Numbered from the stretch's first letter, positions 37,615 through 39,279 are shown. The stretch: 64,000 nt of DNA from Macrostomum lignano (GCA_002269645.1 NIVC01000731.1:186001-250000); one strand, 5' to 3'. Translations and numbers: made by a program. Notes: generated by a model from the letters alone, not told the origin.

Positions 37615-39279
37615 ATGGAAACGCAGGACTCGACGGCGAGGGCGGCTGATTTGCCACGGCAGGTGCAGCTGCGGCCCGGCAGGCCGGCGGAGGATGCGGA
37701 GTTTGTGGCGCTGTGCGTTCGCGACTTGGCGGTCAGCCACGAGGGCATGCTGCCGTTCTGCCACATGGGCGCCAGCGACCACTTTCGGGTGCTGCAGTCC
37801 GGCCTGGCCCGTCTTCTGGTGGCCGAGGCAGCCGGACGGCCGGCCGGATTCGCGCTGTACACCCGGTGCCACCTGGACAGGCAGCCTAGGCCAGGACTCT
37901 ACCTGCAGGCTGTGTACGTGTGCGAGGACTACCGGGGGCTGAAGGTGAGAGCGATCAGTGAGGCTGTTATGATGTGCTTAACTAGCTACTTGTAGTAATA
38001 AGAGGCACACTTCTAGTAGTAGTAGTACTACTAATACTAATACTACTACTACTACTACTACTACTACTACTACTACTACTACTACTACTACTACTACTAC
38101 TACTACTACTACTACTACTACTACTACTACTACTACTACCGCTAACACTACTACTACTACTTGCAGGTAGGCAAGTCTCTACTCGTGGCTCTGGCTCGCC
38201 AGGCCTTGGCAACCGGCTGCGACCACATCAAGCTGATTGTGCACACAGATAACGAGGCTCTGTCCTGGTACCAGCGCATTGGCTTCCAGGTGCTCACAGA
38301 GACCGAGGGGGTCGCCTTTTTTGAAATGAATGACGTGGACTTTGTTGCTGGCCTGGTGGCCGCAGCCGAGCAGCCGCTGCCAGACGGAGCCAGCCTGCGC
38401 CTGCGGCCCTGCGACGGCGCCGACGGTAGGCGATTCGAACTCCGGACTTCCGGCTGCGACTGTCGCCTGTTTGGCGCCTCCGAGCTCAGCTACTGCATGT
38501 GGGAGGGAGAGGCGGTGCAGGTGAGAGCTCAGCTACTGCATGTGGGAGGGGGAGGCGGTGCAGGTGAGAGCTCAGCTACTGCATGTGGGAGGGAGAGGCG
38601 GTGCAGGTGAGAGCTCAGCTACTGCATGTGGGAGGGGGAGGCGGTGCAGGTGAGAGCTCAGCTACTGCATGTGGGAGGGGAGGCGGTGCAGGTGAGAGCT
38701 CAGCTACTGCATGTGGGAGGGAGAGGCGGTGCAGGTGAGAGCTCAGCTACTGCATGTGGGAGGGAGAGGCGGTGCAGATGAGAGCTCAGCTACTGCATGT
38801 GGGAGGGGGAGGCGGTGCAGGTGAGAGCTCAGCTACTGCATGTGGGAGGGAGAGGCGGTGCAGGTGAGTGCTCATAGGAGGCTTGAGCACAGGAGATGTA
38901 GAAACCCGTCAGCTTCCACTGCCAACCCCAGATCGACTTGTCGGCCGAGAGGCCGGTCTGCGCTGCCGCATCGGAGTGCGGCGCCGTCAGCTCCGCCTCG
39001 CTGAAGTGCCTGATGGGCCGCCTGCTGCAGCTGGCCGCTGCCGACAAGCCCACCCTACCGTCGCCGCATATCGTGTGGGTTGACACCGTCGCCAACCGAC
39101 CGACTTCCGGCGGACTCGATGACCTGCTGATGCGCGCCGGCTTCGAGAACAACACGGCCAATGAAGGCTGGCTGATCTGCCTGCTGGCCGGCCGGCCGCT
39201 GCACCTGCTGGCCAACAGGCCGCTGAACTGCCGCCTGCACCCGGAGCTGGCCGGCTGCCCGGATTCACTGTCTGACTGA
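37615..39279 (+). CDS. SSAT/diamine N-acetyltransferase-like double-GNAT protein, copy 1 (3 exons, 343 aa)
   Basis: Exons 37615-37944, 38167-38520, 38932-39279, all phase 0. VQLRPG..D, LLVAEA.GRPAGFALY, YLQAVYVCEDYRGLK|VGKSLL (motif A), NEALSWYQRIGF (motif B), then a degenerate second domain (SYCMWEG..IDL...GFENNTANEGW). Confidence 0.9.
37985..38160. repeat. (CTA)n microsatellite, GNAT copy 1 intron 1
   Basis: Direct reading. Confidence 0.97.
38481..38869 (+). repeat. 43 bp tandem repeat made of the exon 2 3' end plus the splice donor
   Basis: gagctcagctactgcatgtgggagggagaggcggtgcag|gtga x9. Confidence 0.96.

Follow-up and report, generated by a model that had tools for sequence, protein, structure and literature searches.

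Four tandem genes encoding a two-part acetyltransferase-like protein were found in a 64,000-nucleotide stretch of the Macrostomum lignano genome (GCA_002269645.1 NIVC01000731.1:186001-250000), which is called the window here. The first gene, c1, lies at 37615-39279 on the plus strand, and its paralogs c2, c3, and c4 follow on the same strand. Our best explanation, in which we place about as much belief as doubt, is that the four genes encode a double-GNAT protein that joins a domain 1 of the SSAT type (SSAT, spermidine/spermine N1-acetyltransferase) to a very diverged, presumably non-catalytic GNAT-like domain 2. So far, the array has been found only in M. lignano. What is new is the combination, in a four-gene array, of an SSAT-type domain with a degenerate, predicted GNAT-like domain for which no sequence relatives were found outside M. 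lignano; the architecture class is known. The initial annotation, which was made from the sequence, had proposed an SSAT-family GNAT followed by a degenerate second SSAT-like domain. What stood is that the second module is conserved and that its model is GNAT-like; its SSAT ancestry gained no support from sequence.

Both domains are encoded in one polypeptide

Domain 1 and domain 2 are one polypeptide. The c1 gene consists of three exons encoding 343 amino acids (aa), from the ATG start codon at 37615 to the TGA stop codon at 39277-39279, and its introns are all GT-AG and phase 0. Exon 1 (37615..37944, aa 1-110) encodes strands b1-b4 of the GNAT domain and ends halfway through motif A (…DYRGLK|); a GT donor follows at 37945. 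The Pfam GNAT match covers residues 66-150. Intron 1 (37945..38166) splits motif A. Exon 2 (38167..38520, aa 111-228) carries the remainder of domain 1 (a3-b7 and helix a5), the PLPxG linker, and the start of domain 2, in which three strands are predicted before the exon ends at CMWEGEAVQ. After intron 2 (38521..38931), which is mostly minisatellite, exon 3 (38932..39279) encodes aa 229-343 and the stop codon. It holds the predicted b4'-a3'-b5'-a4'-b6'/b7' elements of domain 2 and finishes with a poorly conserved tail.

A tblastn search of the window with the spliced c1 protein identified exactly four copies, all on the plus strand and within 13.3 kb. The gene for c2 (41785-42952, 330 aa) has exons at 41785-42081 and 42257-42952, and that for c3 (45521-46628, 335 aa) has exons at 45521-45856 and 45957-46628. 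The c4 gene (47887-50919, 335 aa) has exons at 47887-48192, 49906-50280, and 50593-50919, with splice sites that are all GT-AG. No fifth copy or related open reading frame (ORF) was found elsewhere in the window, and this includes the ORF at 11691-12188 with its "PEGWRLHKL" string. The initial annotation had described the same two-part architecture in all four copies, and both the tblastn search and the alignment of c1-c4 bore this out. Alignment of the paralogs covers their entire length. Identity to c1 is 41-42%, and the four copies with this shared architecture are 40-63% identical to one another; in the C-terminal half (C-half), 57 positions are invariant across the four. Every copy has the boundary between its halves (c1 …GVAFFEM|NDVDFVAG…) within exon 2. 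From the middle of motif A through the stop codon (about aa 100 to the stop), c2 and c3 are each encoded by one exon, which in c2 takes in domain 2 together with most of domain 1. Since no copy has an intron at the junction, the fusion is not a product of the splicing model.

Public protein models were also compared with the array. A word-indexed search of 5.8 billion proteins with full-length c1 returned two matches, P0001 and P0002, both of which are M. lignano entries in UniRef. P0001 is 90% identical to c1. P0003, an NCBI gene call, is the c2 protein with one residue difference; it is carried by two contigs in the M. lignano assembly GCA_002269645.1 and covers both halves. Together, these matches mark the window as M. 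lignano DNA. Frameshift-like stretches are present in models P0002 and P0004-P0007.

Domain 1 is an SSAT-type GNAT domain with an altered active site

A complete GNAT domain makes up domain 1 (about aa 1-177 of c1). In all four paralogs, it was matched by Pfam PF00583 with 45.7-55 bits against a cutoff of 20.7 (E 9e-12 for c1 to 1e-14 for c4), and PF13508 and PF13673 passed as well. Its best sequence match in the PDB was the P. aeruginosa thialysine acetyltransferase 12jc/2fe7 (E 3e-12, residues 17-150), followed by human SAT2 (1.4e-8), plant NATA1-type enzymes, and human SAT1 (3e-6). When the four N-terminal halves (N-halves) were compared with a SAT1 profile using hhalign, they matched SAT1 residues 3-159 with a probability of 98% (E 2e-13). 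This profile was made from 79 vertebrate SAT1 sequences, and its human SAT1 query is 100% identical to PDB 2b4d. None of the NCBIfam equivalogs reached its cutoff for the protein.

Domain 1 aligns end to end, from b1 to a5, with the SSAT/thialysine acetyltransferases (SAT1, SAT2, 2fe7/12jc, and NATA1), and it has their DYRG…G…LL motif-A region, N..A…Y.R.GF motif B, and (T/S)E.EG tail. Motif B (N..A..(W/C)Y.R(I/L)GF) and the SSAT-like tail had both been reported in the initial annotation, and both are present and align to human SAT1. The general-acid Tyr is kept, with Tyr145 corresponding to SAT1 Tyr140.

Several features set these proteins apart from SSAT. The position of SAT1 Glu92 is an invariant Gln98 in all four copies, as seen in two independent alignments, and Ala or Ser stands in for SAT1 Asp93. 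In SSAT, Glu92 has been proposed as the remote general base, and replacing it with Gln in the mouse enzyme confirmed that this residue is essential (PMC4964394). Motif A is atypical as well, reading RGLKVG, RRHRVG, or RRHQVG as opposed to Q/R-x-x-G-x-G/A. Its Arg and last Gly are kept and the central Gly has become K, R, or Q, giving Rxx(K/R/Q)VG in place of the P-loop RxxGxG. The b3-b4 loop does not have the DPW motif. Finally, an SSAT subunit is a single domain of ~170 aa, whereas the proteins here have a second module and, at 330-343 aa, are twice as long.

Since Glu92 is replaced by Gln and motif A is atypical, domain 1 looks less catalytic than its initial label of "catalytic-looking" implies. 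Without Glu92 and the P-loop Gly, domain 1 would seem to have a different acceptor, or weak or altered activity. If domain 1 is active, it probably uses an amine other than that of the classical SSAT polyamine reaction, or a route other than the classical one.

Domain 2 has a predicted GNAT-like fold

The C-half is about 170 aa long (about aa 178-343 of c1) and begins in the exon that it shares with the end of domain 1. An invariant PLPxG linker and a conserved helix lead to domain 2 itself (about aa 185-320). A GNAT-like fold for domain 2 is moderately supported by structure prediction. The C-half of c2 was modeled alone with AlphaFold 2 (AF2) from a four-sequence alignment that included no GNAT sequence. 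The resulting model has a predicted local distance difference test score (pLDDT) of 65 and a predicted template modeling score (pTM) of 0.64, and residues 1-135 are mostly at pLDDT 62-86. The trailing helix of domain 1 comes first in the model, followed by four long antiparallel strands, a 13-residue loop, and then helix, strand, helix, short strand, and final strand. This is the GNAT order b1-b2-b3-b4-a3-b5-a4-b6-b7 minus helices a1 and a2.

A Foldseek search of the PDB with this model gave eight hits at E <= 1e-3, all of them chains of M. tuberculosis ICL2 (E 4.5e-4, probability 1.0). The part of ICL2 that was matched would be its GNAT-like C-terminal domain, to judge from output that gives no target coordinates. 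The TacT, KacT, and GmvT toxins and the E. faecalis spermine/spermidine acetyltransferase came next, and further matches included FdhC, PAT, GNA1, Rv1347c, PseH, NAT9, and the tandem GNAT MAB_4324 (7q3a). Ranks 1-44 were GNAT-fold proteins with one exception, and unrelated folds appeared from rank 45 at probability <= 0.12. Against the viral library, the C-half had no hit at E <= 1e-3, and the named matches were mostly GNATs. A non-GNAT fold for the C-half, which the initial annotation had held up as the outcome that would speak against its proposal, was thus not what the model and the nearly uniform list of GNATs returned.

An alignment of a different kind gave a compatible picture. With extension allowed, hhalign placed the C-half collinear with SAT1 from b3 to the C-terminus (b3-b7), so that YCMWxG falls on the turn between b3 and b4, opposite SAT1 TYDPWIG, and G(F/L)E…W falls on a4-b7. 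These positions match the independent AF2 secondary structure, which amounts to consistency and not to proof.

A full-length model, also from a four-sequence alignment, had a pLDDT of 50.7 and a pTM of 0.47, with most of the C-half below 50. Its Foldseek matches were ordinary single-domain GNATs with <=179 columns aligned, and no double-GNAT entry in the PDB was aligned over a greater length. We take these matches to reflect domain 1 only, although the output carries no query coordinates.

Sequence comparisons of domain 2

The C-half had no match in Pfam at E <= 10, and its profile had none among all PDB sequences at the same threshold. When 1.84 billion representative proteins were scanned exhaustively with HMMER, only six relatives of the C-half were recovered: four M. 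lignano proteins in UniRef, one from an M. lignano assembly, and one source-less look-alike, P0004, which looks like a noisy read-through of this array. Likewise, full-length c1 and the N-half of c4 retrieved only M. lignano entries in word-indexed searches. Therefore, a deeper alignment could not be built, and this limited both AF2 runs. The restriction to M. lignano reflects the collections that were searched, from which other macrostomid transcriptomes may be absent.

Comparing the two halves with each other by hhalign and blastp yielded only an 11-residue patch (RIGFQVLTETE~RAGFENNTANE, P 0.27). Against the 79-sequence SAT1 profile, the C-half aligned locally only over an a4-b7 patch (hhalign P 0.28), and the global mode gave no alignment. 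A hidden Markov model (HMM) of SAT1 gave the real C-halves scores that did not stand out from those of their shuffles (1000 each): 120 of the 1000 c1 shuffles scored at least as high as the real sequence, and the C-halves of c2-c4 had no hit. The initial annotation had read repeated SSAT landmarks in the C-half. From the hhalign probability and the comparison with shuffles, it follows that these landmarks are statistically indistinguishable from chance, and a specifically SSAT ancestry of domain 2 is without statistical support from sequence.

The same annotation was correct that the C-half has neither an RxxGxG-like motif A nor the motif-B Tyr. The b4'-a3' loop of domain 2 reads RPxCxxxxC(x)… where RxxGxG would be, and the position equivalent to Tyr140 is Leu or Met. 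The C-half contains seven invariant Cys (c1 C192, C207, C209, C220, C238, C244, and C311; about 38410-39180 in the window). The CxC (C207/C209) and Cx5C (C238/C244) pairs would fall on the predicted sheet edge that carries the CoA loop in a canonical GNAT and could be a metal or redox site.

Comparison with known double-GNAT proteins and a proposed role for domain 2

Double-GNAT architecture is rare but recurrent, and typically one of the domains is active (PMC12219266). Single-chain examples with one inactive domain are NMT, HisAT/NAT16, GLYAT, the mycothiol synthase MshD, Eis, VipF, and a clavulanate-pathway enzyme (PMC12219266). NMT, HisAT, and Eis have their active domain at the N-terminus, and HisAT shows that a substrate can be bound between the two domains (PMC12219266). 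The proteins described here are like these in layout, with CoA and catalytic motifs in one domain only and a second fold that is predicted to be of the GNAT type, and the double-GNAT MAB_4324 is among the Foldseek matches of domain 2. Double-GNATs are defined by pseudo-twofold packing, and the layout here is likened to theirs from sequence and the C-half model. Unlike the known examples, the array proteins have an SSAT-type catalytic domain, their domain 2 is far more degenerate and has no a1/a2, and they show no sequence or Pfam kinship with the others. The Pfam families for NMT and GLYAT gave no hits, and the MshD model TIGR03448 scored 15-19 bits against a cutoff of 163, with domain 1 only. 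As to whether such a fusion is already common, a point raised in the initial annotation, the answer is mixed: double-GNATs are known by architecture, and no sequence family is shared with them.

The best structural match of domain 2, ICL2 with its non-catalytic, acetyl-CoA-sensing domain, offers a second comparison. The C-terminal domain of ICL2 is GNAT-like in fold, shares no sequence homology with known proteins, and binds acetyl-CoA as an allosteric activator (PMC6788997). The TMq of this match is only 0.42. In ICL2, the GNAT-like domain is fused to a lyase, whereas here the predicted domain is fused to another GNAT. The ICL2 domain binds acetyl-CoA and drives a large tetramer rearrangement; domain 2 is likened to it by its predicted fold.

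Taken with these systems, the double-GNAT reading would work as follows. Domain 1 would be the sole part of the protein able to bind acetyl-CoA canonically. Domain 2, as a very diverged GNAT-like module without a1, a2, the RxxGxG loop, and the catalytic Tyr, would be non-catalytic and act as in other double-GNAT enzymes, possibly by forming a second wall of the acceptor cleft. Alternatively, it might be a ligand-sensing or oligomerization module resembling the ICL2 C-terminal domain. We infer a non-catalytic partner role within an intramolecular pseudo-dimer. An intramolecular substitute for the partner subunit is plausible by analogy, because human and mouse SSAT are dimers that exchange b7 strands (PMC4964394). 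A bolder version, which we regard as quite unlikely, is that a GNAT-derived domain 2 stands in for the homodimer partner of SSAT in one chain, making this the first single-chain SSAT, with the CoA loop rebuilt around invariant Cys and a CxC and Cx5C metal or redox site that gates domain 1.

Alternative explanations

Several results weigh against the double-GNAT reading. No sequence method ties domain 2 to any GNAT, whether Pfam, the PDB searches, hhalign (P 0.27-0.28), or the HMM comparison with shuffles. The fold call comes from one moderate-confidence model made with a four-sequence alignment, and only two of the five models exceed a pLDDT of 60. With GNAT structures, the TM-scores reach only 0.33-0.44, and ICL2 has the best E-value (4.5e-4). 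The full-length model is too poor for the interdomain packing to be read from it. In addition, the C-half is under weak constraint, and 33 residues of domain 2 are missing from P0001, which is the only public model of c1.

The weak constraint on the C-half leads to one alternative, which we consider rather improbable: that it is a decaying or weakly constrained extension without a specific role, in a young array where only domain 1 matters or where pseudogenes are forming. By counting methods, the ratio of nonsynonymous to synonymous substitution rates (dN/dS) lay at 0.49-0.66 in the N-half and at 0.73-1.0 in the C-half. Such methods overestimate the ratio under the strong bias in GC content at third codon positions (GC3) found here, which makes the estimates crude. 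On these values, domain 2 is clearly the less constrained part. The intact ORF does little to offset them, since GC-rich sequence leaves several frames open and an intact ORF is therefore weak evidence. Decay would also fit the loss of Glu92 and of the P-loop Gly from domain 1 itself, the residues missing from P0001, and the finding of the family in M. lignano only. However, even the bona fide GNAT half has only slightly lower ratios, and in each half, differences are more numerous at third codon positions than at first and second ones. No frameshifts were seen over about 150 aligned codons, with paralogs separated by an NG86 dS of about 0.47-0.87. This, the structural kind of the invariant C-half residues (W, C, G, P, Y, and F), the invariant PLPxG linker, and the compact AF2 fold argue against neutrality.

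A conserved domain 2 need not be derived from GNAT, and a novel cysteine-rich a/b domain with a metal-binding or redox function, on which AF2 defaulted to a common fold, would account for the seven Cys among the 57 invariant positions of the C-half. Such a domain would also explain the absence of sequence signal to any family, the low TM-scores, and the wide spread among the five AF2 models. We nevertheless find it unlikely, as the order of elements and the Foldseek list are specifically GNAT and not a mix of a/b folds, and the AF2 alignment had no GNAT sequence in it. Moreover, a GNAT-derived fold and a Cys-based site can coexist. A false fusion of separate genes through an annotation artifact deserves almost no credence. 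Pfam sees one domain only and the public models of the locus are messy, but the idea is refuted by the intra-exonic junction, the uninterrupted exon from about aa 100 to the stop in c2 and c3, and P0003, which spans both halves.

Introns, splice choice, and repeats in the array

Intron 1 occupies the same phase-0 site inside motif A in all four paralogs. In c1, it is mostly a (TAC)n microsatellite, which Tandem Repeats Finder reported with period 3 at 38026-38161. Intron 2, which follows CMWxGxxxQ, is found at a homologous phase-0 site in c1 and c4 (50281-50592 in the latter), and c2 and c3 are without it. Therefore, an intron was lost or gained within this young gene family.

Intron 2 of c1 is largely a 43-bp minisatellite of 9.2 units (38482-38874). 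The unit consists of the last 39 nt of exon 2 plus a GTGA donor, so the repeat yields about nine reiterated donor sites, and the 43-bp unit is not a multiple of three. Other assembly contigs (L001/L002, about 150-800) have a similar or slightly higher number of units. The acceptor at 38930-38931 gives a protein that is collinear with c2 and c3, which have no intron there, and it was adopted for c1 because it restores this collinearity. P0001 uses an acceptor at 39029-39030 instead, 99 nt downstream. The 33 aa that this removes (IDLSAERP…GRLLQ) correspond to strand b4' and helix a3' as predicted for domain 2. The P0001 acceptor may represent an alternative isoform or a mis-annotation.

The c2 and c3 copies differ in how far their parts have diverged. 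Exon 2 is almost identical between them (42257-42900 in c2 versus 45957-46600 in c3), with a C-half dS of 0.008, whereas the first exons are far more diverged and the N-half overall has 70% amino-acid identity. This pattern points to recent gene conversion or partial duplication, which would have produced chimeric copies.

Most of the introns and all of the intergenic spacers of the array are micro- and minisatellites, with units of 3-43 bp and tracts of up to 1.7 kb. The tracts lie at 37276-37545, 39286-39451, 39885-41630, 42951-43655, 44407-45366, 46630-46809, 47179-47831, 48365-49824, 50297-50565, and 51108-51451. Many of them generate long spurious ORFs in several frames.

Significance and neighboring features

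If domain 2 is a GNAT remnant packed on an SSAT-type domain, this protein would be a test case for how a strand-swapped obligate homodimer becomes an asymmetric single chain. It would also show how far the GNAT fold can drift and still fold, having lost a1/a2, the P-loop, and any detectable sequence signal, and it would add an independently arisen animal example to the short list of double-GNATs. The array would further stand out as a lineage-specific, rapidly duplicating set of acetyltransferase genes in an organism that serves as a regeneration model. In practical terms, the importance is modest, as the architecture class is known and a single flatworm species is where the family was found.

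Just upstream of the array, at 34922-36153, is a 1.2-kb low-complexity repeat that reads as (CLSV)n, (DRQT)n, and similar strings in all frames and is not a gene. Nine kb downstream of the array, a 535-aa open frame on the plus strand (59854-61458) matches the transporter families Sugar_tr (E 7.5e-26) and MFS_1 (E 2e-21); its N-terminal sequence gives the impression of an SLC22-like product. On the minus strand at 1-864, an open frame running off the start of the window matches the rhodopsin family of seven-transmembrane receptors (Pfam 7tm_1, E 6e-40).

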